Below are positions 3,692-39,863 of a stretch of DNA of 64,000 nt, piece by piece. A model generated the notes under the pieces. It searched no databases, was not told where the DNA came from, and saw only the letters and a list, made by a program, of their open reading frames with translations. The stretch spans positions 186,001-250,000 of the forward strand of contig NIVC01000557.1 in assembly GCA_002269645.1 (NCBI GenBank), in the 5' to 3' direction. Numbering within the stretch: the first letter of the stretch is position 1; each line of letters starts with the position of its first letter. The position numbers and the translations under genes were made by a program. Origin of the DNA: Macrostomum lignano. Its lineage: Eukaryota.

Positions 3692-4589
3692 TCAAAACTT
3701 TGGAAAGAAGAGCAGCTTTAATAGTGTAGATTTGTAGCACGGTATCTGCCGGTTACCAGTCTCATTGAGAACATCTGATGTCACCTTGGGCAGTAAATGT
3801 GTGAACTCTACTGGCGAATCCGGACTGTCATCGCTGTAAGCCTCGAGAACTGAGTCTTTGAACTTTTGAATGAACACGGTACCTGTGTTACGATATCGAT
3901 CTGACATGTCAAACTCAACAACGCTGTAGATATAAAGCGAGTCCTCATTCTTACAGGAATTTCCAAGACCGTGGCAAACTGGGAGTGTTATCTCCCGAGG
4001 GACGTGACGACAGGCCTGTGTGATGAAAATCTTCGGTTTTCCTTCCAGCCATTTGTGAATTTGGATGCGCTCGAAAAGTTCGTTTAATTTGACTTCAGCT
4101 CCGTCTGACGAGTACACGGAGCCCAGGAAACCATGCGACATGATGCACAGCAAGAACGCAGTGCAATTTTTGTACTCGTCCTCCGTGAATAATATTCTCA
4201 GCTCTCTGACCTCATCGAAAAAGGCTCTGCCCACGTCTCGTAACAGATGATACTTAAAACCCAGCTTTTGCAGACTCAGGGGCAAGCAGTCGAGCTCATC
4301 GTCTCTCTCAGCCCCGACGCGTGTTTGAAGTCGTGCAGGATCGTTAAATATGATATTGTTGATCACAATGGCCAATCGATCATCTGAGTTGCCAACGTCG
4401 TATCGTTGCCTTTGAGTAGCTGTCGCCCCACCAGAAGATGCTGAGCCACCCGCAGTTCCCTGCGCAGATCCGCCAGCAGAACCTCCAGCTGAGGCGCCAA
4501 CACCACCTGCTGAGTTGTCCGGGTCCTCTGGATTTTCATGATCCAAATAGACTTGGCCTTGATTGGTTTGATTCGGCAGTTGTCTAATG
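3692..4589 (-). CDS. Terminal exon: Gly/Ser/Ala linker + caspase (peptidase C14A) p20/p10 domain
   Basis: LAIVINN..F, LQTRVGAERD, LGF, CIMSHG (His at ~4133-4135), KPKIFITQACR (Cys at ~4010-4012), p10 motifs DSLYIYS..SDR..TGTVFIQ and QIP..KSTLLKLLFF. Acceptor tttcag|C at 4590. Confidence 0.93.
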
Positions 4590-7500
4590 CTGAAAGTTTT
4601 TAAATCGTCGTAAATGTACATTCAAATAAACTTTTTTTTTGGCAAGCCTTATTTAAGCATCACAAACTCACCACTCTCGAATAAAAGCTGCACACTCCCA
4701 ATGCTTGCCCAGCTCCGCCCACTGCAGGCTTGTTCTCTTGTACTCTCCAACAACTTCCCAATCTTGTAGGCTATCGATGCGCTCACTCAGAACCTTCAAA
4801 ACCTCCTGACAGCCCTGTCGAGCGGCCCAAATAACTGGTGTATTACCAAATCGATCAGCTTGTCTGATGCTGGATCCGGAGTCAAGCAATATTTTCACCA
4901 CTTTAGCGAAGTTATTTTTCGCTGCATGCGTCAAAGCGGTGTAGCCAAGCCGATCCTGTAAAAATTGTTGTGTCTCCAGCTTGTTTGCGTATTTTAAGTG
5001 TGTAATTGCAATTTTCTCGTGAACTCACCTCGAGATTGAGATCTGCATCCATCTGTAGCAGCTCTGAAACTACTTCATCATGGCCAGAGTGAGCTGCGAG
5101 CATCAAAGGAGTCTGTCGCATGTTATCGGGCCTGTTCGTCTCAATCTGCAGTACGTTTTCGTCCAGAATTCGCCGAAACACTTTCACCGGTTGCAGGTGG
5201 CCGAGAAAGCTCGCCCAACTCAGGGCGGATCTGCCTGATACGTCGCAAATCGAGACGACTGCTGGGGCCTTTTCTAATAGCTTCTCGACTATGTCGCTTC
5301 TGTTCTTCTTGGCAGCAATTACCAGCAGCGTCTCCTTCAATGGCGGCAGCTGAATACTTAAGTCCGATGAGCTGTGAACGTGACGATTAAGATCTTCATC
5401 ACTCCAATCTTGTGGTCTCCTGTAAAATTAAAAAATGATGCTACAGAGATAATTGTAAAATGTACCTTTGATCCGTGTTACTTTTATTGAAAAAAATACT
5501 GCAGCTACGAGTACTAACCTTGTTGCAGGTTTCGTCGTGTACTCATTCAGTACAAGGTTCTTTAGCTTATTTCTTAAACGTTCAACATTATCCCAGTCTC
5601 TTGTGTCGAATGCCAGACGATTTTCGGTTAGTATAGTTTCCATTTTGGCTAGACAGAACTGTACTTGCTCCTTAGAGCTGCTGTAATGAGCGATGGTCAT
5701 GTGCTCTTCAAAGTCAGGGTACTCCTGTAATTGCGAAAACCAGGCATCAATTTCGCTGTTTGTAACTCCTAACAGCTCGGCTCTCAGGCTCCACGCGAGG
5801 CAGCAGAAGTTCACGTACAGATGAGAGCTTCCCGTCCTGGATTTTCGAATAACAAGCAGGTTTCTGGTAAATTCTGGCAGGCATGAGAAATCCGCAACTT
5901 CTGAAGGACAGGGAAGACAGAATCGCCATGCCCAATCAGTGTCCTGAAACACTTGATGCATCTTTTCAATTTGATCTGGCTTCCAGCTTCTCATCACTGT
6001 GTGGTTGTCAAGTCCTTTCAGAACTTCTTTTGCGGCTTCGAAGTCTTCAAATTTATATAGCAGCAGAATATTCAAACAAGCTGCTGTAGTCTTGCACCAA
6101 GTCAGATTTACTAGAGGTTTTAAGAGTGCCATGGCATCATCAGCCTTGTCCGAAAACTGTTCAAAGTAGCTACGAACCACATCGTACAGCTTTCCGAATG
6201 TAGAGACGCTGATATCTGGGTTTCCTTCAGTCTGCAACGGGTTCAAGGCTTGCAGTGGAACCATTGTAAATGGATGAAAATAGAAATTTTCATTCTGCAG
6301 CGGCTTCAGCTGGTGCTGCAGCCTTTTTACGACAGCTTCAGCTACGTTAGTTGTGCAAAGTCGCATGAGCTGGTCTCGAACTCTCGATTTCGTTTGCTGA
6401 AAGTCGCCACCAACACCAGCATTGGTGAAGTACAGAGGGCTGTCCGGGAGAAAAAAACTCGGCATACATATGTCCGGATCGGGATTGGAGTCGATGAACT
6501 CGAGTAGTTTGTCGAGCGACTCGTTTAAAAGCCAAATTAAGTTGTCTGGCCTCCAAATTTGTTCATCAAAACCGTGCTCATGAAGTAAGTAAAGCAGCAA
6601 TGTCTTGGCGTGGTACGTCTTGAGACCCGCTGTAGCGACTTGACCAGATACAAATATTTTGAGTACGAACTTCATGAGGATGTAAAGTTGACCTTGACAA
6701 TCAGTTAAACTCCTCATGATGGCTTTTTCCAGAAAGCTGAAACTAACCCGAAGTTCGTGGTCAGCAGTGGGTCTGGCTGCTCGAACCAGATGCAAAGGCG
6801 GTACGTTTGCTTCAAAGCAGCCACGAATAACTGTCTGCTCAGCAATCGAGTTGGAGCAGCATGGATTGGCAAAGCAGAAGCTCTCAGCCGGCTTGGAGCC
6901 GCATTCTGCAGCAGTCATAGCTGGTTCACTTCCTGGAAGAGTTTTAAAATACGCAGCGCGTCACTACATGTAGTTAGTAAAATAGAATATAAAAATTAAT
7001 TTAAGTCAGAGTCTCTCCTTCTCTGTGGCCTTACCAATGGTAGCATCCACTTGGACATAACCTTGTTTAACTTCAAATCTGGTTTTCTTCACCGCTTTGC
7101 AGCTGCATCCATTGAGTAAATGCATTGGCTCTCGAGGCCCGACAAGACATGTCCAATTCATGTCACAATCATCCGACGCTTGGCCATTTAGCTGGGTCAG
7201 ACTGGAACCCCATCCCTCAGCGAAGCTTCCTACCAAGTGAATGTATTCATTGTTCTCGTGAATTTGCCTGACGATATCCTCCATGGAGTCCGCCATTTTT
7301 TGCTGCAGTTTAGCTCTCTGCGAAGTGAATCCAGCTTCGTTCAGCAGCTTGTGAAGAGCAATGCTTTTTGAAACGTCAGCTTCCATTCTAAAATCGAGTA
7401 ATTTTTCATCCAACAAATGGACAACTATAAGGAATCTGTTAGTTACAAATAAATTAAGGGAAGCAAGCTGTGCAGTTAGGACAGATTGGGACGCAGCATT

Positions 7501-9200
7501 GACTTAAGTATCTATTCTGAAGCTCTGAAAATTGGAAATGCTTCTAGTAAATTTGAATAGCAGAACAGTCCTATCTAGAAAATTTTAGGATCTTAATTTG
7601 GCCCCCATATATAAATGTTAGCTATCTAGTGTACCGATCAATATGTGCTCGTACCTACCTATATGGCTCACTATATTAAGCCAAGCACTTACATGCATTG
7701 TTGCAGATAATAAAAATCGACTACACCTACCCTAATAGGGCATAAATGCAGCCCAGCTCAGCCGCAGCTATTGCGCGGCGCACCTGAAGGCCGTGTACCG
7801 CTGTTCAGTCAAAGGACTGGGGGTTGTCGCCACACACACCCTCAATTACCCCAGCTGACGCCTAGCGGTTAGAGCGACTAACTCACGACTAAAAGGTCGG
7901 AGGTTCGATTCTCGACCCATTCGGAACAATTTGTGTCCCTCAGCAAGACACTTAACTCTTGCATTTCTTCAGTCCACCCAGCTGTAAAAGATATTGAAGA
8001 ACAATAAACATACTTTTACCACACTTACGGCTGCTCCAACGAGAAGTAGGATGTATGCAAGACTCTGTACTTGAAGTATTCGCTGAAATATAGCATAGCT
8101 CACGGTTAAAACGCAAAGTTTTTGGAATTCTAAAATGTAACGATAATTCACCAACGCAAGTCCAATGCAATTACCCGTCAAACAGTCGCACGATTTGATA
8201 ATGTCCGAGTTTCTCGGCCAACTGTATACTGGTGAGACCATCCTTGTCTTTGTGCAGTGCATTCGCACCGTGGTCAAGCAGCACTTTTGCCGCTCTGACC
8301 TGGCCTGTCATGCAAGCCCGAGTGAGAGCCGTTCTGCCATCATCATCTGTGACGCTGTCAAGGGAGACTTCTATTTCCAGTAGGTGTTGGATTAGTCTGT
8401 GCTGGCCAGCATCTGCAGCAAGCATCAGCAAGTCGCCCAGCGGTGCTCTGTCCTCATTTTCTTCTAAACTCTTTTCCAGCAGAGCTTTCGACGTTTCTAT
8501 GAGGCCGCCTGATACGCAGCGAGCCAAAATCTTCCAGGCGTCCGATGAAGATTTAAATTTTGTACTTTTCAGAGTCGCATTTATCGCTGATTCGCCACCA
8601 GTAATCAATATTTTCTCTAGCAAGTTGAGATCAATGCTCTTAACTTTTTCAACTTCAATTCTAAAAGGTGCTGCTTGGAGAGCCATCGTAAGCTTGATAT
8701 GGTGAAAACTGCAGTTTGGCACTGACAAATCTTTTTTCAATTCAAAACGAGACGAATTGTCTGAATCCAAGGGATAAGTAAAATGTATAATTACATTTTT
8801 ATCGCTGGACTTATCGCTTGAGACGTCGAATTCGGCTAGCTTTACCATGCTTTGCGACTGCTGGGAACAAACATTGAATTCGTATCGATTGATAACTAGC
8901 CTAATATGCGACTCGAGCTTTTCTGGTAGGGAAATTTCGTGTCGCATGCATCCCATCATCACAGCAGATTTCAACAAATTTACCTTGTTACCGACGCCAT
9001 GGCCTTCTATTTCATAATTTGAAGTTTCGCGGTTACTTTCAGAGGCAGGAAAATCTGAGGGTTTCGACTTCTGTTGGTGATCGAATCCTTGCGTTGAAAA
9101 GATTTCAAAGCCCATGGTGTTGCCAAGTTTGCATACAATTGCTACGTACGAAGCATAAGTCTGATTGAGAAGTGGCGCAGGATCAGGCAGCGGTATTAAC
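3692..9200 (-). CDS. Multi-exon ankyrin - cGAS-like (Mab-21) NTase - ankyrin - caspase fusion gene (exons 9200-8175, 7387-7035, 6932-5519, 5419-5029, 4955-4672, 4589-3692)
   Basis: All five introns are GT-AG and phase-matched (2,1,2,0,2). Joined exons give 4281 nt from ATG 9115 (1426 aa plus stop). The 5' end upstream of 9200 is unresolved. Confidence 0.8.
4672..4955 (-). CDS. Ankyrin-repeat exon
   Basis: DRLGYTALTHAAKNNFAKVVKILL, DRFGNTPVIWAARQG, RTSLQWAELGKHWECAAFI. Acceptor tttacag|GAT, donor TG|GTGAGT. Confidence 0.9.
5029..5419 (-). CDS. Ankyrin-repeat exon
   Basis: ETLLVIAAKKNRSDIVEKLL, GRSALSWASFLGHLQPV, RQTPLMLAAHSGHDEVVSELL. Acceptor ttttacag|G, donor GAG|GTGAGT. Confidence 0.9.
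5519..6932 (-). CDS. Mab-21/cGAS-like receptor C-lobe plus helical extension exon
   Basis: LHLV...LRVSFSFLEKAIMRSL..CQGQLYILMK, GLKTYHAKTLLLYLL, W.PDNL..LL.ESLDKLL..I, MPSFFLPDSPL are Mab-21 family motifs. Acceptor cttccag|GA, donor AG|GTTAGT. Confidence 0.88.
7035..7387 (-). CDS. cGLR nucleotidyltransferase N-lobe exon
   Basis: IHLVGSFAEGWG...SDDCDMNW matches the hGS..EG...[DE]h[DE]h NTase signature region. Acceptor gattttag|A (alternative at 7435), donor G|GTAAGG. Confidence 0.85.
7784..7989. mobile_element. tRNA-derived SINE, internally inverted, in the intron of the cGLR-caspase gene
   Basis: A-box-like gcctagcggttagagcg, B-box-like ggttcgattc, core gtgtccctcagcaagacacttaac. Shares sequence with 11669-11865. 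Confidence 0.7.
8175..9200 (-). CDS. Exon with unassigned beta-rich domain + 3-4 ankyrin repeats
   Basis: LLMLAADAGQHRLIQHLL, DGRTALTRACMTGQVRAAKVLLDHGAN, DGLTSIQLAEKLGHYQIVRLF. Acceptor cttttag|G at 9201, donor GG|GTAATT at 8174. Confidence 0.85.
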
Positions 9201-10326
9201 CTAAAAGCAAAAATAAAATTGGATATAGCTTTGCATCTGCACAATTTTAGAGCCAAACTTAAATATGAATAGTTATTGCAATACTTTAGCATCCACGCTC
9301 ACAAAGACATGAAAATTGCACTGTAAGCGATTCTTTTACGCTCGAACTATTTCCCTTGTCGCAGTCGTCCTGGACCCTTAATTTACTCGTCGTAATAAAT
9401 ATGATAAATATGTATAATTTTCACTCACCAAAACTGTGAAAATGAGAAGTTCAAATGAGAGGCAGAGGCTGATAGTGTGCTTGGCTTTCTGTGGCCTCTG
9501 CTTGCTTCTCCGAACTATTTCTATGAGCGTATGACGGACGCTTTCCGGCCTTTACGCTCGTATATCGAGTTTTGAAAATTGACAAGTGAAGTTGCGTACA
9601 GCTAGTTTATGCTTCTATTTTAAGTACATGAGTAGAACTAGCTGCTGCTATACGAGCGTACAGCACTAAAATTCCAAGCTAACTAGCGGGCACTGTACAG
9701 CCAACAACAATGAGAAGGCAGTGGCTGTTTAAAGAAGCCATAGCAACTTGGGAGAGAGGGACAATTGCCTCTCTGGAGTCTGTTGAGACCCCCGTCGCAC
9801 TTGTCCTAGCCCCCTCTCGCTGTGTACATTTGATTCAAGTTAAATTTATTTTAGAACATATGCATATAACATATAGCTGAGGCTTTGTCCTCACTGAGTT
9901 TTGGAGAGCTGACGCCTGACTCCCTGGAGCGCTAGGAAAACGGCCCATCAGGCCATAGTGCTTTGCCAATCCTCCATTTCAATGAGAGTAAGCAGAAGGA
10001 AACGAAGGAAAGCTTCCATCAATAGTCAATTCGTTTCATCTTCTCTTACTGAATTTTTTGCTTAGTGGTTTACAGCTCTTATGTACGAGCCTATGCTTTA
10101 CTACCTTTGCGAATACAAAAAGTATTTAGACACCCTTCAAATCTCGGCATCTGTTCATCTGATTGAAGCAAAAATCTACACAAAACGGGTCATTTATGCA
10201 ACAAAATCAGAGCTAAAGATTTTTCTTTATCGGCCCAACGAGATGAAATCTGTAAACAATTTACTCGACTGAACTACTGAATCGAAAATACGATTTTTGC
10301 TATAACTTCTGGATGGTTTACGGCTA

Positions 10327-10870
10327 GTGTCAAGTCTGTGGCTTGTGTCAATCAAGTCTGTGGCTTGTGTCAAGTCTGTGGCTTGTGTCAATCAAGTCTG
10401 TGGCTTGTGTCAATCAAGTCTGTGGCTTGTGTCAATTCTGTGGATTGTGTCAATTCTGTGGCTTGTTTCAAGTCTGTGGCTTGTGTCAATTCTGTGGATT
10501 GTGTCAATTCTGTGGCTTGTGTCAATTCTGTGGCTTGTGTCAATCAAGTCTGTGGCTTGTGTCAAGTCTGTGGCTTGTGTCAAGTCTGTGGCTTGTGTCA
10601 AGTCTGTGGCTTGTGTCAAGTCTGTGGCTTGTGTCAAGTCTGTGGCTTGTGTCAAGTCTGTGGCTTGTGTCAAGTCTGTGGCTTGTGTCAAGTCTGTGGC
10701 TTGTGTCAATCAAGTCTGTGGCTTGTGTCAATCAAGTCTGTGGCTTGTGTCAATTCTGTGGCTTGTGTCAATCAAGTCTGTGGCTTGTGTCAATTCTGTG
10801 GCTTGTGTCAATCAAGTCTGTGGCTTGTGTCAAGTCAATGGATTGTGTCAAGTCAATGGATTGTGTCAGG
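10327..10870. repeat. 18-bp minisatellite (GTCAAGTCTGTGGCTTGT)n
   Basis: Direct reading, with variant units. Confidence 0.95.
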
Positions 10871-11668
10871 TCTTGGCTTATTCATTTTTATAAAATGACT
10901 GTTACTTGAACACTCTGCGGTCAAGGCTCAAGTCTCTTCAGATGCTTCTTGCTCCAAGATTGTCGGTGGTAAAACCCCATCTGATCTGATACATTGTTGC
11001 AAAAAATACTGTTTAGAGAACACATAGCAGTACCTCTAATCTAGTACATTACCAGCTTTATATACATATCGGAAGCCATAAAAATAGAGCATTGACAATT
11101 TTTAATTTTTAATTTGAAAATTGGAACTTGAAAAATTAAAATTTTAGCAATTTGCAATTTAGTCTCTATTAAATGGTGAATCTGCAAAACTATTTGACAT
11201 GCTGAGCAAAACTTATGAGGATGAGGACTTAAGGCATGTATGCATGGGTTCACACAGTTCTGGAAACTTTTGCAACGCCCCTCGCATATGTAGGTACAAC
11301 TATCGCATAGTGCATGCCAGTCTGGACTAAATTTGCAAACAGACCCTGCGATAAAAATAGCAATTAGTCAGATATACATTGCAATTTCAGAAACTCAACA
11401 CTCAAAAAATTCTAGTTTTATAATAAAATCGACCTTGTTTATCTTGTTTTAAAGAAGTTTGCAGTTCATACTACTCAAACAACATTTTCGGAGTAGTGCT
11501 AATACGAGCTATAAAACATTGAATAAGACGAAACACATGCAAAATGAGATATTACGGTCGTGTATTTCACTCTTACTAGTGGAAATCATGCTATAAAATG
11601 TAGAAATTGACATTCTCTAATGATTAAACAAAGACGAGTTAAGTTTGAAAATATCAGATGAAAAGATC

Positions 11669-12356: not shown

Positions 12357-12760
12357 AATAGAGATTGAGCGCCTTAGCTCGTAGTGAAGATGGAGCGATA
12401 ATGAGCGTCTAATAGAAATTGAGCGCCTAATAGAGATTGAGCGTCTAATAGAGATTGAGAGAGCCTAATAGAGATTTAGAGAGCCTAATAGAGATTGAGC
12501 GCCTAATGGAGATTGAGCGCCTAATAGAGATAGAGCGCCTAATAGAGACTAATAGCCTAATAGAGATTGAGCGCCTAATAGATATTAAGCGCCTAATGGA
12601 GATTTAGCGCCTAGTTGAAATTGAGCGCCTAATAAAGGTTGGGCGCCTAATAGAGATTAACGCCTAATAGAGATAGAGCACCTAATAGAGACTGATTGCC
12701 TAATAGAGATTGAGCGCCTAATAGAGTCTTATAGCCTAAGAGAGATTGAGCGCCTAATAT
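12357..12760. repeat. 18-bp minisatellite (CCTAATAGAGATTGAGCG)n
   Basis: Direct reading. Confidence 0.93.
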
Positions 12761-14036
12761 AGAGTAGGAGCTCCAAATTTAGTGTTTAGTGCTCATTACA
12801 GTGTCCACTGTACATGTACCAAACCCATCCTTATATATTAACCTAAACAGACTTTGCTGACTCGGCTCTGTGACTAAAAAGAGACTTTGATAAAAAAACT
12901 GGAACATTGTGTATGTATGGTGCAGTATGAAGAGTGTTACGCTTGGTGCTACAGTAATCCAATTGTCTGATCTGACAATAGGTTGTTCATAATTTACCAT
13001 CTAAAACATGTGTATGCAAATAGTAAGCAGACAAGAATACACCTGTCTGCCTGACTCCATCGCGTGGGAAAATATTGTGAATAGAGAAGAAAACTCTGTG
13101 AAAATGCATGTTGAAAAGCTTCGAATGTCATGAAAAGCTGCGGCTGGATGGCAGCACATTCTATAGGCAATAAATAAACTCTTATAACTTTTGTATTGTG
13201 CTTTATATTTTGTATTCTCCCCCCGTGTCACACTTACCCAAACCAGCAGGTTTATACAGGCCGTTGTATTTCTTCACCTAAGCAATGGCACACTCCATTT
13301 TGCAATCGCAATGCGTCATACAATGTACAGTTTTCATTGTCAATTTTGACCTTCGAGACCCTCAGCTCTAGAAAATGCTAACACCTGTAGTGACTGGCTT
13401 TTATACCTATTTTTGCCTCAACTACTGAAGCCCTTTAAGTGTTAAATTAGTGACAAAAATATCTTCCTCTTGACATTTTTCATTCTTTCTCGCTTCGCTG
13501 CAAATTTGCATTCAAATTTGCACAGAATTCAATACAGCCGCATAATGAACCGCGCAATCTTCGCAGATTGTAAAACTCGAATATTCTATAAGATGATCAT
13601 AAAAAGCTACTTTATTATATCTGGCCTTATTTTGGCTTTTTTACAACTGTTGAACTCTTGCGAACTACTTGGGTCTGCTCAACTATTTTGAAGGTGTGAA
13701 AATACTGCTGCACACTGGGGCCTCGCTGCTTCACTATTCTAAGTTGCATTTCATTGAATTAAAAAGCTGCAAATAAAGATAGAAGATGGCGATACGATGC
13801 CCCCCCTCTACAAAAGATGTCGAGTTAGGGCAGTTCACCCATTGGCTGAGCCTTCCATTGGCGGGGATCCGGCCCGCGCCGCTACCCTCCTCCTCCCCCT
13901 GCTCAGCCTCCTCCCCAACATCTTCTCTATTCATCCATGGTCTGTATCATGGATGATGTCTGTTCATCTGTATAAATCAAGCCCAATAAACTCCCACTTG
14001 TCTAACGTAAAGAATTCTGAAGGTTCAGCTTAACAA

Positions 14037-28373
<14,337 letters not shown>

Positions 28374-29674
28374 GAGACTCTCAGTATCTCCCTGACCGAA
28401 AATTCACAAGCAGATCGAGCGTTTCACTTTTGCATGCAATCGCAGGGACTATAAAACTAACTAATAATACGGTTCCTTTAGCGATCGATATCGATGCATG
28501 CATATGCGACCGGTTGTATTACTAGGTACTATATTTTTAATACACCGGCTGTACATGTATGTATTAATATTTCAACGGTGCTAATACTAGTAGTATACTA
28601 ATGATATGTTATCCATTCCATGAAATGCTGGGGCACCATATGCAGATGAAATCGCTATAGGAATGCAGAATTAGTTGTCACATGTAAACCTGTCGTGCCG
28701 CGAAGGGAGCTACATGTACGTAACAGTAATAGTGTAGGTTGCGGGCCGACAGACCAAATTTGTTTTTAGACTGTTCATTTGGTTTACATGTACGTTTAAT
28801 ATGTTAATAATGGCACTTTACATGCATGTAATTGAATAAAAATTCAACGAGGTCCACTCGATCAGGACTGTGTAACAAGAAATCATTCATATATTAGATC
28901 CTCAATCAAAGAGCGCGCCCGTGCACTGGTAGTCTTTTCATCGAAATTTCCCAACAGAATACACACAAGAGTATTTATTCTATTTCGGAATCTACGCAGG
29001 TGTATTTTTTGCACAATGGTAGAATGGGTAAAAAAATCACAGGGTTTGGCATGTTGTTTCATTGTATACTAGGCCCACACTACAGGGAGCGATTCAAAAG
29101 CAATAAAATTTTCAAAAAATTTTATGTTCCATATACAATAATGTAATACACTAACTGTATTTAGTAAAAAAGTTTGCTATCTTAAAATTTTACCATATAT
29201 TTGTTTAAATGGTCAACGTATAAATCGCATCAATATGACGTTGAATAAGCAGACTCAACTGCTTCAGTAGTTAGTGTCAGACTGGATCATCAGGACACAT
29301 ATGGGCGATATGGCTTATGTCGTATGACGTTAAACATATGTTAATTTTTCATTGACATTAGAAGGCCTATAATTTTTATAAAATATTATGTATTACCTAC
29401 CTAATTTATATTTAATTTAGATCTATATTCCTGAAAGCATTGGTAGGCCCATTAAAGTGCTATCCTAGGCTTAATTTTTGTTGAGTAGGGGCCTAAATTA
29501 AATTAAGAGTACATAGCAATGGCCTAGGCAAATTTAACAATGAGCAGAACTCAAAAAAGTTAAGCATTGGCAATATTTGTGAGAGCTAAAATTGCAGCTA
29601 GTATTGTATAAAATATCAATAACCCAAAGGCCAAAGCTAGGCCTAATGCCGTAGGCTTAACCCATAGGCCTATA

Positions 29675-29972
29675 CATACATGTGCAACCTCCAAAATTCG
29701 GTCAGCCGTGCGACTTAGTTTTAACAAAAATGCGACGTAGTTTTTGGCCAAAAATGCGACTTACATATAAAAAAACCCGAAAGCAAAATCAACGCAACTT
29801 TGGGTAAACGGCAGGAGTAACTATGACTGTTTTATTAAGCTAAAATGCCTCGTCAGCTACTTAGTACTACTCTTCAGGTTATTTTTTGGGTGGGCATTTT
29901 TGCGACTTCCTTGATTGGCCGCCAAATCGGTCGGCCGGATCGGCCGACTCGGCCGACTGTTGCGCATGTATG
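29675..29972. mobile_element. hAT-type MITE (copy at 42666-42963)
   Basis: 14-bp TIR CATACATG(T/C)GCAAC...GTTGCGCATGTATG; 8-bp TSD GGCCTATA. Confidence 0.9.
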
Positions 29973-30571
29973 GGCCTATATGGCCTTATGATAAGGCCAT
30001 GGCCATCTATAATATTTCCTTTTAGATTTGAAACAAAATAGTACAAATGAGATTGAGAATTTATAGGCCTAGGTAGTGCTGGTCTAGCCTAGCTTTTTAT
30101 GTTAAGAAGTAAAGTAGTAATTATTAAAGTAGTAGGCCTAATAAATAGGCCTATTAATTAATTTGTTATAATTAGACCTAGACATTTCATATTTATACAA
30201 TTATAGGCCTATTAAAAAGTTTTGGCAATAATATGCTGTGTGCACTTATAGGCTAGTAGGCCTAGCTAGGATCAAATTGTTTGTGGTTAGTTTGCTAGGA
30301 TATATTGCTTTGTCTATTGTCAGTTAATTTGCTGGCAAATAAAATGAGTTTTTAGTGGTGGGTATGTTTATTGTTTGTTTAGTATAATTATGAGGTAGGG
30401 GTTAAGAAAGATAATAAAAAAAATTTGGATTTGGATTTTCCTTGTAACTGATTGGCATTGAGTTTGCACAAATGAATACAGAAATGGTGCAGACGAATCA
30501 CAACAAATTGCTTTCTCCTGTTTTATTCCAACAGCCGGGGTCCTCAAATTCTGGGGGAGGGTAGTCGTAAT

Positions 30572-30875
30572 CATACATGCGCAACTTCCAAAATTCGGTC
30601 GGCCATGCGACTTAGTTTTAACAAAAAATGCGACGCAGTTTTTGGCCAAAAATGCGACTTACGTAATAAAAACTGTAAAGCAAAATTAACGCAACTTTGG
30701 GTAAACGGCAGAAGTAACTATAACTGTCTTATTAGGGCAAAATGGCTCGTAATGGCTCTAATGGCTTAGTAATACTACTTAGGTTTTTTTGGGTGGGCAT
30801 TTTTGCGACTTCCTTGATTGGCTGCCAAATCGGTCGGCCGGATCGGCCGACTCGGCCGACTGTTGCGCATGTATG
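30572..30875. mobile_element. hAT-type MITE, same family (copy at 43564-43867)
   Basis: Perfect 14-bp TIR CATACATGCGCAAC; 8-bp TSD GTCGTAAT. Confidence 0.9.
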
Positions 30876-33874
30876 GTCGTAATTGTAGCGGAGCAGTCTT
30901 GTAGCGGCATGGTTGTTCAAACAATAATACACCGGAGATTTTGGTGTCATAAAATTAATGTGTTGATTTGCTGAGCTGGTTACTTTTGGTAGGGTAGTTG
31001 CTGCCACCACTATAATTTACATATTTTGGAACAAATTAAGTCTTAGAGCTTTCTTTGAGATGAGAACTTTGGTTTTTTTATGCCCCATAGGCAAATGACT
31101 CAAGAAATACTATGGCTTATGTCAATAGATAAATGTGGTGTTTATGTTTATTAAGTTTCGTTTATTATTTAGCAGGCTTAATAAAGAAAGTTACTAATGC
31201 TATTAATAATTAGGACAATTACTGGGGTTTGCGTTTAATTTGTTACGATGACAATGATTGTGGGCGCCAGTGCACAAAACGAGTTAAGAAAGTAAAATTG
31301 AACAAAACTTGGCAAAAGAAATCTGAAGTGGAGGAGGAGAAGAAACGCATGAACCTAAAGTGGCACATCATGGGCTATATAAATATTAATGGAGAGGCTG
31401 CAGTCAATGAGTGTGGCTGCCACTGGTCACACTAGTAGACCAAAATCTTGGACGTGGACACAACAGATGGAACAGCTTTATTGACATGCAAATTGAGAAA
31501 ATAAAACAAAAAATTTAAGCAAAATTCCAGCAGGGGAAAACTCTTTTTTTCCACAGAATGGGATGACAAAACACTTGCTAGATCTCTAATCAAAAGAACA
31601 TGAGAAAAAATTATTAGCAAACAGACAGGAAAAAATTAACTCTTTTGTGAGCAGTTTGAAGGGCTATTAAAAAATAAAACAGTTAATTAAAATTCAGACC
31701 AGTGGCACCTAACTGCCACAATTATATGACAAATATTGTATGATTAGTTAATTAATTCAGGTATAATTTAGCCATCAATATTCAAAGCAAAAAACAAATT
31801 ATTATAGTTTATTTATACACTGCTTAATATAATTTAAAGAGATGACACTATGTAATTTAGCTTTCATTTTTAACTGTGATTTTAAACTTTGATTTTTATA
31901 TTTTAATTATGATTTTGTAACCTATTTCCTATGAATTTAGTTGTAGTTATCCCATCTCCTATTTTTTCACTATGAACTCTTTTTTTGACTCTAAAGAAAA
32001 AACCACATGAGCTTTAAACTTTGTGCAAAATTTCTCCCAAAATGTAAATTGAAAACTTCCAACTGCTGATCATTCATCTGCTTATTTGCTTATTTGCTGC
32101 AAATACTGCTCTTTACACTAATATATGCTTTGCTGCTTCATTGCTAGGTATTGTTTTCATTGGACACAATAGCATAGCAGATGAACTGTCCACCTTAGCA
32201 TGGATCTCCAGTAGACAAACTGATAGCAGATTAAATGACCTAGTTTGCCCCTAGTTTGTACTATAGACAACAGGAAAAATGACTATTGCTTCATGGCTAC
32301 ACCAATACATGATTAAATTGAGTGCTTATAAAATAAACTAGATTATAAAATGGTAATATTAGGGCAATGCCAACTTTGATTATAGCTACAATAAAATGTT
32401 AGTATGAATAGATAACTTGCTATTGCAATAATTGAATGAATTATGAATACTTGATAAATATCTAAAACAATAAGATCTAATAAAATCGCTATCATTTTGC
32501 ACCACTGCCAAGAAAGTGTTCAGTGTATGCCAGAGTTTTTTAGGCAAAATTGAAAGTTATATACCAATTATGCCAAAAATTAGAAATGTGACTGTCATGT
32601 ATACCAAAATTTCAAAATGATGCAACCTTACTTTGCCCTATGAGAATAAAGATAAATGATCCTTTTTACATTCCAACAATCAAGGACCTTTTCTATTGTT
32701 AGGTTTGATGTTTACATGTACATTATAACAAAATAAGTGTTGTATCTATTACTTTATAACAACTTGCAATCACAAAGTTCTAAAACTTAAACCCTTTAAA
32801 AACACTATCACATTCAATTAGTATATATATATATATATACATATTTATTTATTCATATATATACTTTTTAAGACTCAAACACACCAAATATGCATGTTAA
32901 TGAACTTAGAACTATAAATACAAAATAGTCTCCTTTGTAGGTAGCCATTAATATCCATTTTTATATGCTTTTTGTCTAATATAAGATTTGAATAAAGATA
33001 TATGATAACTGAAATTTCACTATACATATAGTTATTATCTGCATATATCAGAATTTTATTAATTGTGCTTATACAATTCTCATACAATATAAAAATCTAT
33101 TTTCATAATTAAGCTAGTTGCTATATATAATATAGTGCTCATAGGGTTGCTTATGCATCATTGGAAAGATAATTTCATTGATTTCTTTTTCTCTTGCCTA
33201 ATATAACAATCCGTATATCTTCCAAAAATATATATTGTATATAAAGATGACATATTGAACATGTTTTATACCCTTAGTCTAACTAATTTTAGCTAAGATT
33301 AAAAATATTTAGTCCAACATATATTGTCTCTTAGAAATTGAAAATATATAATAAAGTTCTAGCAAATGCCAATGCCTACTTGAAGCTACCAATATCTCTA
33401 CCCTATCCTTTGCATTGCTAATCCTTTCTGATTAGTTGTAGAAGTTTGCAGGCTTCATGTGTATAGATTAATTCTATTTTGCAATTGGTAGGTGTCTGAA
33501 ATCCTTAAGAATCCAAATAATTATGAGATTATTAATAATTCACATGAAATATAAACTATAAAAATATCAAATATGAATAGGCTTGAAACAATAGGATGTC
33601 AATGTCATTTTTGCATCCTGGGTCCGAATCAAGGATTTCAAATTAAAGTTAATATGTCATTTGTGACATACCCTATGGGTCTATGAGCCAACAAACCTAG
33701 ACTGTAATATGTATTATAGATATAGGCTTTAAATTTAGTTTTAAATATTGCCATTGCCAAGTGTAGTCAGTACCTGATAATCATTATTAATAAATTTCAG
33801 GTGCCTATATTCAACAGAGCACCACTTGTTATTATTGTATTGCCTTAGGTCACTTGCTAATCAATCAATCAATC

Positions 33875-34161
33875 ATGAAGGCACAACAACAACAACAACA
33901 GCAACCTCCCAATGCGCAACTTCAGGCATCTGTTTCGCCTAGAATAAAAATTGTGCTGGGCGAAAAGCCCTCTGTCACGCACTGTAACCCATTCTACCTC
34001 ATGAGCAAGGAGCCGCCACAGGAGGCGCCATTGACTGGAGCTTCCAATTTGATCAAGCATCACGATCTTGAGCAGGCTTATTCTATGTACTGTACCAGGC
34101 GTTTGCGTGAGGAGCTGTCGTGTTTTCTGCCTGGGTTACCTGGGCAGATTGATACTAATGG
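33875..34161 (+). pseudogene. MED19: Orphan duplicate of MED19 first coding exon (second exon absent in this copy)
   Basis: Identical to 46867-47153, but followed by the intron satellite and then the duplication junction. Confidence 0.85.
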
Positions 34162-34164
34162 GTG

Positions 34165-34861
34165 AGTCTTGAGTCAGGCTGATTGCTAACAGGTCAGGCT
34201 GATTGCTAATAGGTCAGGCTGATTGCTAACAGATCAGGCTGATTGCTAATAGGTCAGGCTGATTGCTAACAGGTCAGGCTGATTGCTAACAGGTCAGGCT
34301 GATTGCTAATAGGTCAGGCTGATTGCTAACAGATCAGGCTGATTGCTAATAGGTCAGGCTGATTGCTAACAGGTCAGGCTGATTGCTAATAGGTCAGGCT
34401 GATTGCTAACAGGTCAGGCTGATTGCTAACAGGTCAGGCTGATTGCTAATAGGTCAGGCTGATTGCTAACAGGTCAGGCTGATTGCTAATAGGTCAGGCT
34501 GATTGCTAACGGGTTAGGCTGATTGCTAATAGGTCAGGCTGATTATTAATGGGCCAGACTGATTATTGGGTCAGACTGATTATTAATGGGTCAGACTGAT
34601 GATTAGTGGGTCAGACTGATTATTAATGGGCCAGACTGATTATTGGGTCAGACTGATTATTGGGTCAGACTGATGATTAGTGGGTCAGACTGATGATTAG
34701 TGGGCCAGACTGATTATTGGGTCAGACTGATTATTAATGGGTCAGACTGATGATTAGTGGGTCAGACTGATTATTAATGGGCCAGACTGATAATTAGTGG
34801 ATCAGACTGATTATTAATGGGCCAGACTGATTATTGGGTCAGACTGATTATTAATGGGCCA
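34165..34861. repeat. Two adjoining 20-bp-type minisatellites (AGGTCAGGCTGATTGCTAAY)n then (GGGTCAGACTGATTATTAAT)n; full copy at 47157-47935
   Basis: Direct reading. It fills the MED19 intron. Confidence 0.93.
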
Positions 34862-35031
34862 TGATCTGAATAATGTGCAGGTTAACAGGTTGGTTCGCCG
34901 GCGGCGGATTATTTATTTGGTTGCTGGTGGCAGTGTCATCATTGGGCTGGCCGTTAAGGTTCGCCCTCAGCGCCCCGCTCCTAGTTTGGCACGGGGTTGG
35001 GAACGGCATTACTCGTTCCCAGAGCTATCCG
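34862..35031 (-). pseudogene. Duplicated 5' stub of the LINE
   Basis: Identical to 21872-22041. Confidence 0.9.
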
Positions 35032-38000
35032 AGAAACCCCATATAACATAGAATCGCCCACAGAACCATGGAATTGCCCACAGAACTATAAAATTGCCCA
35101 CAGAACCATAGAATTGCCCACAGAACCATAGAATTGCCCACAAAACCATAGAATCGCACACAGACCCATAGAATCGCCAACAGAACCATAGAATCGCCAA
35201 CAGAACCATAGAATCGCCCACAGAACCATAGAATCGCCCACAGAACGATAGAATCACCCACAAAACCATAGAATCGCCAACAGAACCATAGAATTGCCCA
35301 CAGAACCATAGAATCACCACAAAACCATTGAATCGCACACAGACCCATAGAATCGCCAACAGAACCATAGAATCGCCAACAGAACCATAGAATCGCCCAC
35401 AGAACCATAGAATCGCCCACAGAACGATAGAATCACCCACAGAACCATAGAATCGCCAACAGAACCATAGAATCGCCCACAGAACCATAGAATCGCCAAC
35501 AGAACCATAGAATCGCCCACAGAACCATATAATCGCCCACAGAACGATAGAATCACCCACAGAACCATAGAATCGCCAACAGAACCATAGAATTGCCCAC
35601 AGAACTATAAAATTGCCCACATAACCATAGAATTGCCCACAGAACCATAGAATCACCACAAAACCATAGAATCGCACACAGACCCATAGAATCGCCAACA
35701 GAACCATAGAATCGCCAACAGAACCATAGAATCGCCAACAGAACCATAGAATCGCAAAACAGACCCATAGAATCGCCAACAGAACCATAGAATCGCCAAC
35801 AGAACCATAGAATCACAACAGAACCATAGAATCACAACAGAACCATAGAATCGCCCACAGAACCATAGAATCGTCCACAGAACCATAGAATCGCCCACAG
35901 AACGATAGAATCGCCCACAGACCCATAGAATCACCCACAGAACCATAGAATCGCCCACAGAACCATAGAATCGCCCACAGAACGATAGAATCACCCACAG
36001 AACCATAGAATCGCCCACAGAACCATAGAATCGCCCACAGAACAATAGAATCGCCCCTGAAGCTCCATATCGGATAACCAAAACAATTATCATGGTCACG
36101 TAGAATCATTGCTTCCGTTTCAGCGAGCGGTTGACATTTCAATTATAATTCTACAATTATATTGGAGACTTGCTTCGTTGCTAAAACACATTCACTTCCA
36201 TATAGCCTGCATATGAAGATTACGTAATCCATTAGCACTTGGTGCTGCTTGAAGTTCCATGTTCAATCTTTTTAAGCACCCATCTAGCGATACAGATCTA
36301 TCTCTTATTCTGCATCTTCCCTTGACATATTTCGTGCTGGTCAGTAAGGGCTATCATGTCTAGAAATTTGAAGATTTTTTCAAAGCATTAACATTTTTGT
36401 TGTCTTCTTTTGCAACATGTCAATCGGAAGATATGTTAGTGTTTGTCAGTAGAAACAAAAAACATTTGCTGCGTCTGCAAAAAACAGGAGAAGAGAGATC
36501 AGATACAGAAATCTCCAGTGCCCCAAAGTCTTTGACCCCTGAACTGAACTGATGGGAGCTGTGTGCATGGAATATCTCACAAGCCCAAAACTTCATATAG
36601 GCTTTGTACGGAATTTCCCATTGTCAAAAAACTCTTGCTTACTAATTCCGCTAGCTTAACAACTTAAACTAATTTGACAATGTGAAGAATCGAGCTTGTG
36701 AAGAATCGAGTCTGTGACGAATCGAGCTTGTGATGAATCGAGCTTGTGAAGAATCGAGCTTGTGAAGAATCGAGCTTGTGAAGAATCGAGCTTGTGAAGA
36801 ATCGAGCTTGTGAGGAATCGAGCTTGTGAAGAATGGAGCTTGTGAGGAATCGAGCTTGTGAAGAATCGAGTCTGTGAAGAATGGAGCTTGTGAAGGATCC
36901 AGCTTGTGAAAAATCGAGCTTGTGAAGAATCAAGCTTGTGAAGGATCGAGCTTGTGAAGAATCGAGCTTGTGAAGAATGGAGCTTGTGAGGAATCGAGCT
37001 TGTGAAGAATCGAGTCTGTGAAGAAGGAGCTTGTGAAGGATCGAGCTTGTGAAGAATCGAGCTTGTGAAGAATCGAGCTTGTGAAGAATCGAGCTTGTGA
37101 AGAATCGAGCTTGTGAAGAATCGAGCTTGTGAAGAATCGAGTCTGTGAAGAATCGAGCTTGTGAAGAATCGAGCTTGTGAAGAATCGAGTCTGTGACGAA
37201 TCGAGCTTGTGACGAATCGAGCTTGTTAAAAATCTAGCTTGTGAAGAATCGAGTCTGTGAAGAATGGAGCTTGTGAAGGATCGAGCTTGTGAAGAATCGA
37301 GCTTATGAAGAATCGAGCTTGTGAAGAATCGAGCTTGTGAAGAATCGAGCTTGTGAAGAATCGAGCTTGTGAAGAATCGAGTCTGTGAAGAATGGAGCTT
37401 GTGAAGGATCGAGCTTGTGAAGAATCGAGCTTATGAAGAATCGAGCTTGTGAAGAATCGAGCTTGTGAAGAATCGAGCTTGTGAAGAATCGAGCTTGTGA
37501 AGAATCGAGCTTGTGAAGAATCGAGCTTGTGAAGAATCGAGTCTGTGAAGAATCGAGCTTGTGAAGAATGGAGCTTGTGAAGATTCGAGTCTGTGAAGAA
37601 TCGAGCTTGTGAAGAATCGAGCTTGTGAAGAACTGAGCTTGTGAAGTTTCGAGCTTCGAACTTTTCTGTCTTCCTCTGAAAACAAGATCTTTCAAGATGG
37701 CTTGGAAGAATGAAAGAAGGGTCGCATGATTCCGAAGCCATTTGAACTGAGAGGCAGAAACTTAAGGAAGCGATTTAAAAGATAAGAAGATATACATGTG
37801 TCTAACAAAAATGACTACTTTATTAAAACGCTAATAATTGTATTGTTCCAATTATTTTATACATTCTAAGACCCGGAAAATCTAGTCAATAACTCTATTA
37901 GCAATAATTTGAATTCGATTTCTGCCGATCAATATCGATAGCTGATATTGCTAAGAGTAAGGATTGCTGGGAGCTCACACCACCTGCTGTGTTTGCCCAA

Positions 38001-39863
38001 TTAGTGTCAATAACCAATCAGAGATGCTAAGAGTTTGCACAGTTCAGTTCAGTAAGAAGTGTCTACACTGTGTAGTTGTGTCAGTCATTTTTCTCTCACC
38101 ACGCTGTTCCTCATTTCTCCAGTTCCCCATCTTCATCTCATTATTTAATAGTGAAATTTTTGCTAGCAATTTCTGGCTATAGTTTTTAACGATCTGTTTA
38201 AACAGGTCAACTTTGACAGTGAGCAAGTATTGTTTCAAGAGCTCAACTCACTCAGGTCCATATTGTAGACAGAACGAGGAGTGGGAGAAAAGAGGGGAGA
38301 GGTCCAGAATCTCTTCTTCATCATCGTTTCAGACTCCTATTATACGGTAAATCCCATTAGAAAGCTGAATCGTTTAATCAGGTTGAGAGAAGACTTGAGT
38401 CGGCGGTATAAGCTTGGTTTACGCTGTGTCAACACGTTCTGGGGAGTTCCGAAGAGAGTCAGTCAGTCTCAAGTCTGAAAGGGTTTTTGAAGCGATATTG
38501 AGAAAGTGACTGATGATCTCCAGTCTTTGAGTTCTGTATAAGCAATAGAAACCCCCTTGAAGCTCGCTTTACACACATATTAGTGCCTGAGTGCAGGGAT
38601 TGGCATCTTCAGTTTCATTCTTGACCCACTGCGATCGAGGCCCTATACGTATATGCGCATGGGGGTTGGGAAAAATATAGCAAACAGACCAGCAACTTGG
38701 CTTTTATACTTGGCGGTGCCTGACCGTTGAAATTGGGAGGCGGCGGGCCCGAGAAAGTATGGAGAAAAGCTGGACAAACAAGGCAATCCGAGAGTTCCAA
38801 GCCAGCCGACGGTTCCCCGAAAATCCCCAAAAAACAAAGGTGTTTCGGTTTGGGGGAGGACTGCAATAATAAACACCTATAAGACAGGGATGCAGGCTTG
38901 AGGATCAAATTGTTTGCACACTCCTGCGCAGTGTGGGTGTCCGGCTAAACCTTATCGAATAGATTTTTTTCTCTTGGCAAAAAATGGCTAATTTTTTTCC
39001 TTGTGCGGAAAATAGCGGAGAATGCCGAGAGCCGCGTGAATAGGAGATGTCAGCTGTCTGTCACGATCGCTGGCCAAATGTAAAAAAGAAGAATTCGATT
39101 CCCAAAGTCTGGCAAACTTGCAATGCGGTCTTTGAATTCCTCAGCAACTTAGGTGGCCGGTTTTCCGTCTGCTGGTCTGAGGAATGCTGCAAGAGGGTTG
39201 GACAACTCTCGATTGTTTTCTAAAATTGTGCATAATATGCATCTATTGTTTGTTTATATTGTTTTGATAACTACGAGTATTGAATTACATGTATATAGGA
39301 TGTTAAAACAGGCTGAAGACAGAAAGAGTATTGAGTGAGATATGGAGAGACTACTGAGTGAGATACGGAGAGAGTGCTGAGTGAGATATGGAGAGAGTGC
39401 TGAGTGAGATATGGAGAGAGTGCTGAGTGAGATATGGAGAGAGTGCTGAGTGAGATATGGAGAGAGTGCTGAGTGAGATATGGAGAGACTACTGAGTGAG
39501 ATATGGAGAGAGTGCTGAGTGAGATATGAAGAGAGCATTGAGTGAGATGGAGAGAGTGCTGAGTGAGATATGGAGAGAGTGCTGAGTGAGATATGGAGAG
39601 AGTGCTGAGTGAGATATGGAGAGAGTGCTGAGTGAGATATGGAGAGAGCATTGAGTGAGATGGAGAGAGTGCTGAGTGAGATATGGAGAGAGCATTGAGT
39701 GAGATGGAGAGAGTGCTGAGTGAGATATGGAGAGAGCGTTGAGTGAGATATGGAGAAGATATGGAGAGAGTGTTGAGTGAGATAGAGAGATTAGTAAGTC
39801 ATAATTCGTTATCCGTTGATATTACGCAATGTAATTTTAACAAGCCGTGTCCTGTCCCCACAG

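Follow-up and report, generated by a model that had tools for sequence, protein, structure and literature searches.

In animals, cGAS-like receptors (cGLRs) are understood as enzymes that signal via diffusible nucleotides to STING, and caspases as proteases that are recruited via death-fold adaptors. A gene of the flatworm Macrostomum lignano raises the question what a cGLR-type domain does when it shares a single polypeptide chain with a caspase. We analyzed a stretch of 64,000 nucleotides (hereafter the window; contig NIVC01000557.1, positions 186,001 to 250,000, forward strand), in which the gene BOX15_Mlig018330g1 occupies positions 9115-3692 of the minus strand. We show that its predicted product has the layout of an initiator caspase: a non-catalytic N-terminal region of ~1,200 residues, a flexible linker and an intact caspase at the C-terminus. 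The N-terminal region combines ankyrin repeats (ANK) with a Mab-21/cGAS-like nucleotidyltransferase (NTase) module. By its descent and its fold this module is a member of the cGLR family, but its catalysis is predicted to be impaired. We tentatively propose that this pseudo-enzyme cGLR/ANK platform replaces the death-fold prodomain and may control the caspase.

Is the fusion a single gene? The original prediction, made from the DNA letters alone, had joined six minus-strand open reading frames (ORFs) by five introns into a protein of ~1426 amino acids. All six ORFs are present in the window, all five GT..AG boundaries are present and phase-compatible, and the joined frame (4,281 nt, 1,426 amino acids) contains no internal stop. 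Four of the introns, 7034-6933, 5518-5420, 5028-4956 and 4671-4590, were borne out by junction peptides that recur exactly in deposited transcript-derived proteins. The remaining one, 8174-7388, is not a single intron. Aligning it with two paralogous loci revealed a 54-nt mini-exon at 8082-8029 (EYFKYRVLHTSYFSLEQ), flanked by introns 8174-8083 and 8028-7388. The boundaries of the mini-exon read tttcag/C...CC/gtaagt. It is kept in the two other genomic copies (loci L001 and L002), a mini-exon occurs at the equivalent position in the diverged paralog P0066 (PAA93319.1), and the GenBank models use it as well. The gene is therefore described by an intact seven-exon model with a coding sequence of 4,335 nt and a product of 1,444 rather than ~1426 amino acids. 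This corrected model is identical to GenBank PAA80948.1 (UniProt A0A267G4L1), which has the same span on NIVC01000557.1. The protein has been public since 2017 as "hypothetical protein" in GenBank and as "Caspase family p20 domain-containing protein" in UniProt.

The M. lignano annotation was built from StringTie/TACO and de novo transcripts, polycistrons were cut at experimental trans-splice or poly(A) sites, and TransDecoder was used to call ORFs (PMC5730564). Because the GenBank annotation is transcript-derived and cut at such mapped sites, the single-coding-sequence fusion is transcript-supported for this small gene group as a whole. The claim of one gene with one coding sequence agrees with this annotation, in which the exact fusion appears at three loci and in a diverged paralog. 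The start codon at 9115 also stands: the GenBank coding sequence begins there, and the deposited relative P0001 begins at the equivalent Met. On the same two grounds a death-fold exon further upstream was ruled out.

Upstream of the start codon, a candidate 3' splice or spliced-leader acceptor (ttgcttttag/G) lies at 9201..9210 on the minus strand (boundary 9202/9200), and trans-splicing affects 38.8% of M. lignano genes (PMC5730564). Use of this acceptor would remove the in-frame ATG 9292 from the mRNA; neither ATG 9292 nor the in-frame ATG 9310 is used in the GenBank coding sequence. A possible upstream donor, TTTTG/GTGAGT, is found near 9420 (minus strand), and two ATGs of short out-of-frame upstream ORFs (9156 and 9134) lie between the candidate acceptor and the start codon. 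Within the 641-nt intron 2 a tRNA-like or SINE (short interspersed nuclear element)-like stretch at ~7850-7950 (minus strand; GGGTCGAGAATCGAACCTCCGACC) is conserved across the three gene copies. It was recognised neither by ARAGORN nor by Rfam, and neither matched anything in the gene.

The domain order that had been proposed, an unassigned region followed by ANK, a Mab-21-like module, a helical part, a second ANK, a G/S linker and a caspase with SHG and QACR, proved correct. All features described here lie on the minus strand. Exon 1 (8175..9115, residues 1-314), which matches PAA80948.1, begins with the start ATG and encodes an N-terminal region of unknown fold and without recognisable domain (residues 1-228, 8432..9115), found otherwise only in P0001 and P0095, and the first ankyrin block (residues 229-313, 8177..8431, detected by Pfam). 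This block stands directly upstream of the NTase module in all family paralogs. After the mini-exon (exon 2, 8029..8082), exon 3 (7035..7387) encodes the N-lobe of the NTase-like module with its spine helix, GS loop and acidic strand, and exon 4 (5519..6932) the remaining NTase core, the Mab-21_C helix bundle and a family-specific helical extension. The Mab-21/cGAS-like module as a whole spans residues 346-676 (6253..7347) and is split by intron 7034-6933; the helical extension covers residues 677-935 (5377..6252) and carries the motifs DWAWRFCLPC...LPEFT...SHLYVNF. The appended module begins in exon 5 (5029..5419) with the second ankyrin block (residues 936-1150, 4577..5376, detected by Pfam), which continues in exon 6 (4672..4955). 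Exon 7 (3692..4589) contains a flexible acidic G/S-rich linker (residues ~1151-1209, 4400..4576), the caspase domain (Peptidase_C14, residues ~1210-1444, 3695..4399) and the stop codon at 3694-3692. The ankyrin repeats score above the Pfam threshold in two blocks (Ank_2, 145 bits, E=9e-43). Pfam detected no CARD, DED or Death domain at E<1, either in the full protein or in the N-terminal 228 residues. With no death-fold detectable, the ANK/Mab-21 region occupies the prodomain position ahead of an intact caspase, in line with the earlier proposal that a cGLR/ANK module stands in place of the death-fold prodomain.

The protease part is complete. Peptidase_C14 matches with 90.3 bits against a cutoff of 21.4 and covers profile positions 2-232 of 233, and the domain can be aligned over its full length to human caspase-3 (E ~1e-13). 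Both residues of the catalytic dyad are present, H1298 in SHG (4135-4133) and C1339 in QACRH, corresponding to caspase-3 H121 and C163. The Asp-specific S1 pocket is likewise present, formed by R1236 (TRvG), Q1337 and R1377 (SdRyrntGtvFIQ), which correspond to caspase-3 R64, Q161 and R207 (Q1337/C1339, 4012-4010). The alignment thus confirms the caspase that had been recognised by its SHG and QACR motifs, with the dyad and both S1 arginines intact. The P0066 caspase keeps the critical residues (SHG and QSCR) together with an ED/[SC] linker site. Where caspase-3 has its cleavage site IETD/S, the aligned window protein has no Asp. A candidate autoprocessing site may instead be D1362 (3943-3941), which belongs to an invariant E-D just before [SC]LYxYS that is also present in P0066. 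The best sequence matches of the caspase domain were the effector caspases 3/6/7 and an amphioxus caspase-3-like protein. Searches with the caspase alone and with a three-sequence caspase alignment missed the query's own proteins and are uninformative on donor caspases or on Mab-21 plus C14 combinations elsewhere.

What is the central module? Pfam gave no direct call on the window protein: PF20266 (Mab-21_C) reached 22.3-23.4 bits, below its cutoff of 24.1, and PF03281 did not match. Since a single-sequence scan has limited sensitivity, this score is not evidence against homology, and paralogs do pass PF20266 (P0066 with 24.7 bits, PAA86972.1 with 48.7 bits). The latter is an M. lignano ANK-fused protein that Li et al. 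(2023, PMC9980059) list among the cGLRs and have expressed. BLASTP aligned the window protein to PAA86972.1 over ~400 residues and both lobes (E=4e-44, 32% identity). A profile of the module, run against 1.84 billion representatives, retrieved 583 relatives. The strong matches that were checked all came from M. lignano, and distant ones (E ~1e-13 to 1e-10) bear PF03281 and PF20266. With a 31-sequence family profile, 41 of 42 matches among PDB sequences were cGAS, cGLR1, MAB21L1 or Mab-21-domain proteins (best E=2e-7), with cGAS and cGLR1 at E=2e-7 to 6e-7. This profile supersedes an earlier one from seven paralogs, whose sole match had been cGLR1 (E=0.1). An AlphaFold2 model of the core (predicted local distance difference test score, pLDDT, 87.8; predicted template-modelling score 0.90) was compared with the PDB by Foldseek, and the top 50 structures were all cGAS, MAB21L1 or Cv-cGLR1 (probability 1.00, TM scores 0.46-0.57). 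Taken together, BLASTP, the family profile, the PDB profile and the modelled structure are four independent lines that place the module in the Mab-21/cGAS superfamily. Of the label "Mab-21/cGLR NTase" given to it in the original prediction, superfamily membership therefore stands, and a direct Pfam call and the enzymatic sense of the name do not.

Two attempts at this step were set aside. A model of the whole 590-residue central region from a seven-sequence alignment reached a pLDDT of 42 and was not used for the fold search, and P0176, tried as a bridge for the N-lobe, turned out to be another degenerate family member without a Pfam match. The NTase lobe also contains a His/Cys cluster encoded by exons 3-4 (H421, C426, C474, C475 and H497; HLxxxCxC … CC … H) that is conserved in 73-95% of 59 members. 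The cluster is a possible structural zinc site that does not coincide in position with the cGAS zinc thumb.

Can the module still make a nucleotide? Li et al. (2023, PMC9980059) define cGLRs by the active-site motif h[QT]GS-X8-20-[DE]h[DE]h-X50-90-h[DE]h together with homology in two lobes and AlphaFold2 structural homology. Both forms of homology were found here. The motif departs from the definition: G385-S386 is present and is followed (X=20) by D407-M-N409-W. In an alignment of 59 family cores the consensus reads GS[FY]xEGWG...S-D-[IV]-D-h, with S, D and D each at least 90% conserved, and canonical PF03281-positive relatives bear a like signature, GSxAEGTxTxGhxS-D-h-D-hhh. In the AlphaFold2 model the strand starts immediately after D407. 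Because family conservation, the signature of the canonical relatives and the position of the modelled strand agree, we assign D407 and residue 409 as the catalytic pair on alignment and model. The pair D405/D407 (D-C-D-M) was rejected for this role, as column 405 is not conserved, unlike columns 407 and 409, where at least 90% of family members have Asp.

At this pair, the codons for D407-M408-N409 (GAC ATG AAT, 7156..7164, minus strand; N409 is AAT, 7158-7156) replace the second carboxylate of the [DE]h[DE] strand by Asn. The family strand S-D-h-D reads C-D-M-N in the window protein and two sister copies and N-D-I-N in P0066. The ~50 caspase-less paralogs have D-h-D, a few visibly degenerate sequences excepted; the Asp-to-Asn change was found in both caspase-bearing lineages and in none of these ~50 paralogs. 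The third acid is altered as well. Its position (codon 466, 6883..6885, minus strand) lies in P-A-x-D in the family; the window protein has Glu466 there, and P0066 has Thr. This column corresponds to the D-h-V-P-A strand of one canonical relative, and its spacing from GSxPAVT is presumably that of cGAS D319. In its context, P-A-E-S, the C-terminal side of E466 lacks the hydrophobic flank that the cGLR motif requires. The cGLR active site thus appears to be switched off in exactly the protease-bearing lineages. Synthesis of a nucleotide in cis, which the original prediction had offered as a trigger, is unlikely with the second carboxylate changed to Asn in all caspase-bearing copies and the third acid to Glu here and to Thr in P0066. 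Its description as a nucleic-acid sensor finds no support either: the pI of the NTase module is acidic, at ~5.8 where the family median is 7.3, and the whole protein has a net charge of ~-32, whereas nucleic-acid-responsive cGLRs are associated with high pI (Li et al., 2023, PMC9980059).

The window protein is part of a Macrostomum-specific expansion of ANK-fused cGAS-like (Mab-21) proteins. A full-length search recovered two deposited relatives with ANK and caspase, P0001 (1,536 amino acids, 88% identity) and P0002 (1,099 amino acids, 97% identity), and a like architecture is annotated at locus L001. The only other caspase-bearing paralog is P0066, a protein of 2,111 amino acids that is 35-39% identical and has an equivalent Pfam layout; among the best 150 family representatives the caspase is limited to the window group and P0066. 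The C-terminal modules of the window protein and P0066 are collinear through ANK, an ECAxxIRxCIR junction, G/S linker and caspase (35% identity, E=3e-74), and the two genes agree in all six intron positions, including those of the mini-exon. The appended ANK-linker-caspase module (exons 5-7) starts exactly at intron 5518-5420, the fusion point, and caspase-less paralogs terminate shortly after the equivalent of exon 4. An intron-bounded module, collinear C-termini and common introns therefore point to one old exon-shuffling-type fusion, at an intron, to a single member of this family; the gene that resulted has been kept in two deeply diverged lineages. Between recent copies dN/dS is 0.31-0.44 over residues 229-1444. 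So far the family has been seen only in one species, with a highly duplicated genome.

The sister copy L002 (NIVC01002235.1) is 97% identical and has an in-frame TAA in exon 2 (GACGCCTAAAAA), at the equivalent of window ~7370. Three further stops fall in its N-terminal exon, and the likeness to the window breaks off at position 8770 of the latter. The stops account for the truncated GenBank model PAA59752.1, which begins inside the Mab-21 module; L002 may be a decaying copy or encode an N-terminally truncated isoform. Another M. lignano member of the family, P0065, contains two complete Mab-21 modules in tandem (residues 26-373 and 773-1112), resembling the multi-cGLR and OAS2-OAS3-type fusions noted by Li et al. 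(2023).

How might such a protein work? Induced proximity is the established mechanism of activation for the initiator-caspase layout, and caspase activation by ligand-induced dimerisation is a reasonable inference. With a key catalytic residue lost, a sensor or scaffold "prodomain" is likelier than a nucleotide-making enzyme. The Mab-21 module would then be a pseudo-nucleotidyltransferase that serves as a platform for binding of a ligand or partner and for self-association. Engagement of the platform would bring caspase domains together and activate them, possibly with autoprocessing at the conserved ED/S site (D1362). The output would be proteolysis or cell death instead of a diffusible nucleotide, the NTase chemistry having been abandoned. 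We hold this control of the caspase by a pseudo-enzyme cGLR/ANK platform to be a real but tentative possibility, which falls somewhat short of an even chance.

Several observations weigh against it. The caspase is by sequence most like effector caspases 3/6/7, which are classically activated by cleavage and not by proximity. Asn can sometimes still ligate metal, and D405 provides an alternative register, D-C-D-M, that formally complies with the motif, so residual NTase activity may be possible. An hhalign comparison of the family profile with human cGAS aligned only the C-lobe, and the register was fixed through the canonical relatives instead. The AlphaFold2 model was built on the 97%-identical core of P0002 and not on the exact window sequence. 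The three copies are 94-97% identical, so the transcripts could come from another copy. The N-terminal 228 residues and the helical extension found no match in PDB sequence searches. Finally, a crude neighbour-joining tree of the NTase core fails to group the caspase-bearing proteins in one clade (10/500 bootstraps). Our provisional explanation is that P0066 has evolved at an accelerated rate; alternatively, other paralogs may have lost the caspase module, or paralogs may have exchanged domains.

The closest competitor to a platform that controls the caspase is that the protein is an ordinary executioner-type caspase. Its N-terminal part would tether or inhibit the protease or be its substrate, an upstream caspase would cleave it, and its role would lie in developmental or regenerative apoptosis and not in pathogen sensing. 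The likeness to effector caspases 3/6/7 and to the amphioxus caspase-3-like protein fits this idea, as do the conserved Asp at the inter-subunit linker and the pseudo-enzyme status of the module, which suggests a scaffold role. Effector caspases, however, normally have very short prodomains. In addition, the architecture has long been kept, its ANK and Mab-21 modules are typical of innate-immune receptor families, and the gene belongs to a large lineage-specific expansion, which is a hallmark of conflict-driven genes. We consider an executioner of this kind unlikely, but still a serious contender.

In a second alternative the degenerate pocket would bind, without turnover, a nucleotide signal made by intact ANK-cGLR paralogs and thereby switch on the fused caspase, standing in for STING. 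Asp-to-Asn is a classic substitution for binding without turnover in general enzymology, and within the family it is confined to the two caspase lineages, next to ~50 paralogs that have a complete triad but no effector domain. Moreover, MAB21L1, which has no predicted functional active site, was crystallised with CTP (PDB 5eom), and a planarian lacks recognisable cGAS and STING (PMC13563047). If this were true, the caspase-fused paralogs would be the missing effector arm, and an NTase-derived second-messenger receptor would replace STING in an animal lineage. The idea is entirely inferential, though, such a receptor is without known precedent, and the loss of two of the three acids in P0066 suggests decay of the pocket and not retuning. 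It seems to us improbable.

More doubtful still is the idea that the module works as a cGLR enzyme which responds to nucleic acid and whose nucleotide product acts in cis on the caspase, a CBASS-like logic (cyclic-oligonucleotide-based anti-phage signalling system) in one chain. The cGAS-like fold and family membership, the GS loop, the formal fit of D405-C-D407-M to [DE]h[DE]h, the conservative Glu as third acid and the intact caspase would all agree with it. Yet in the register of the family and its canonical relatives, S-D-h-D, Asn takes the place of the second catalytic Asp in all caspase-bearing copies, the third acid is also lost in P0066, column D405 is not conserved, and the module is acidic. 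Pfam detected no SAVED, STING or CARF-type sensor domain beside the caspase, and Li et al. (2023, PMC9980059), who report 15 active enzymes, name no M. lignano family member in their main text. We regard such an enzyme as very improbable.

An artefact or decaying chimera, that is, read-through or mis-joined annotation of two neighbours or a recent non-functional fusion, seems to us the most improbable of all: the in-frame stop in exon 2 and the further N-terminal stops of L002 and an only moderate constraint (dN/dS) would suit it, whereas the frame is open across six phase-compatible introns in the window and L001, a paralog only 35-39% identical has a like seven-exon structure with intact caspase catalytic residues, and the annotation pipeline cuts polycistrons at experimental trans-splice or poly(A) sites.

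Which known systems come closest? The ANK-fused cGLRs (PMC9980059; in M. lignano PAA86972.1 and PAA45980.1) have, as the window protein, an ankyrin block directly upstream of a Mab-21 core and helix bundle and belong to one species-specific expansion. They keep the D-h-D...D triad and have no effector, whereas the window protein has D-M-N...E and the ANK-linker-caspase module. The three caspase-bearing accessions are absent from the examined portions of the tables of Li et al. (2023), as expected if the active-site criterion filtered them out. With initiator caspases (caspase-8/-9/-2, Dronc, CED-3) the window protein has in common a long N-terminal region, a linker and a C-terminal His/Cys caspase with an Asp-specific S1 pocket. 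Unlike these, it has no CARD, DED or DD, its prodomain consists of ~1,200 residues of ANK, Mab-21, helical and ANK parts, and its protease is nearer to effector caspases. The oyster HEPN-Ig-DED-TRADD-N...Mab-21-TPR protein (Kaur et al., 2021, PMC8195603) and the coral DD-cGLRs (PMC9980059) also fuse a cGAS-like domain to apoptosis machinery, again in lineage-specific expansions, but they carry adaptor domains that would recruit a caspase, and the window protein holds the caspase itself. MAB21L1/2/3 and MiD49/51 have a cGAS-like fold with an incomplete triad, too, and for Mab21L1/2/3 no functional active site is predicted (Li et al., 2023, PMC9980059). They form a separate, not orthologous subfamily of stand-alone scaffolds or developmental factors and, unlike the window protein, have no protease.

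Bacterial CBASS and the nucleotide-activated caspase-like (CHAT) proteases of type III CRISPR resemble the window protein only in their logic, the coupling of a cGAS-type sensor to a death effector or protease. They consist of separate polypeptides, and a diffusible nucleotide is sensed by SAVED or CARF domains. In contrast, the window protein is one chain with a probably inactive NTase and no nucleotide-sensor domain. CBASS membership would take an active CD-NTase and a nucleotide-sensing effector; found here were an incomplete triad and, by Pfam, no SAVED, STING or CARF. The Drosophila cGLR-STING-FADD-Dredd (caspase-8) axis (PMC13144350) ultimately lets a cGLR-family sensor engage a caspase in innate immunity. 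It is a multi-protein relay via 2'3'-cGAMP, STING and a death-fold adaptor, all of which the window protein would bypass.

Elsewhere in the window, a block of ~11.9 kb is tandemly repeated at 23011-34869 and 36001-47859 (period ~12,990 bp, 99.95% identity), owing either to a segmental duplication of very recent date or to an artefact of the assembly. The repeat duplicates a zf-C4H2-type ORF exactly (27714-28373 = 40705-41364, 220/220 positions including the stop), and a tandem array with a period of ~16 bp lies inside the block near 23.7-24.7 kb. A LINE-type (long interspersed nuclear element) retrotransposon without long terminal repeats is found at 17856-22019 (minus strand), within GC-rich DNA; its ORFs encode an endonuclease (Exo_endo_phos_2), a reverse transcriptase (RVT_1) and RNase H. 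Satellite arrays were found at 1930-2195, 10322-10879, 12402-12763, 14451-14706 and 16487-17221; they comprise (CTGC)n, two 18-mer arrays that differ from each other, and a 7-mer array that occurs in opposite orientations (AGAGGAG / CTCTCCT). To the 7-mer arrays are due the strong swings in GC- and AT-skew at 14-18 kb. A Med19-like ORF at 47966-48739 (+) and two tandem paralogous C2H2 zinc-finger genes at 57230-58504 (+) and 61303-62607 (+), with 10-11 fingers each and a pairwise alignment score of 1924, are ordinary neighbours and have no evident link to the caspase gene.

How new, then, is the fusion? In the literature searched, no paper treats these loci or accessions and none describes a Mab-21-caspase chain. 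In this respect the suggestion that the architecture had not been characterised holds, and it needs to be narrowed: ANK-, TPR-, multi-cGLR- and death-domain-fused cGLRs have been described, M. lignano ANK-cGLRs included (Li et al., 2023, PMC9980059), and DED-fused ones are known. On the domain evidence, the new element would be a caspase with a non-death-fold, sensor-type prodomain or, equally, a cGLR-family pseudo-enzyme with an effector fusion, which is not categorically new. Most platyhelminths have no cGLRs beyond Mab21-like proteins (Li et al., 2023, PMC9980059), and M. lignano, with its large ANK-cGLR expansion, is the exception. Transgenesis and a well-annotated genome are available for this species (PMC5730564). 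If the module controls the caspase, the gene would be a natural case of a pattern-recognition-type fold that was repurposed as a caspase prodomain, and it would mean that the cGLR scaffold can signal without nucleotide synthesis. It would also offer a possible answer to how the flatworm cGLR expansion works in a phylum otherwise reported to be largely without cGLR-STING signaling.

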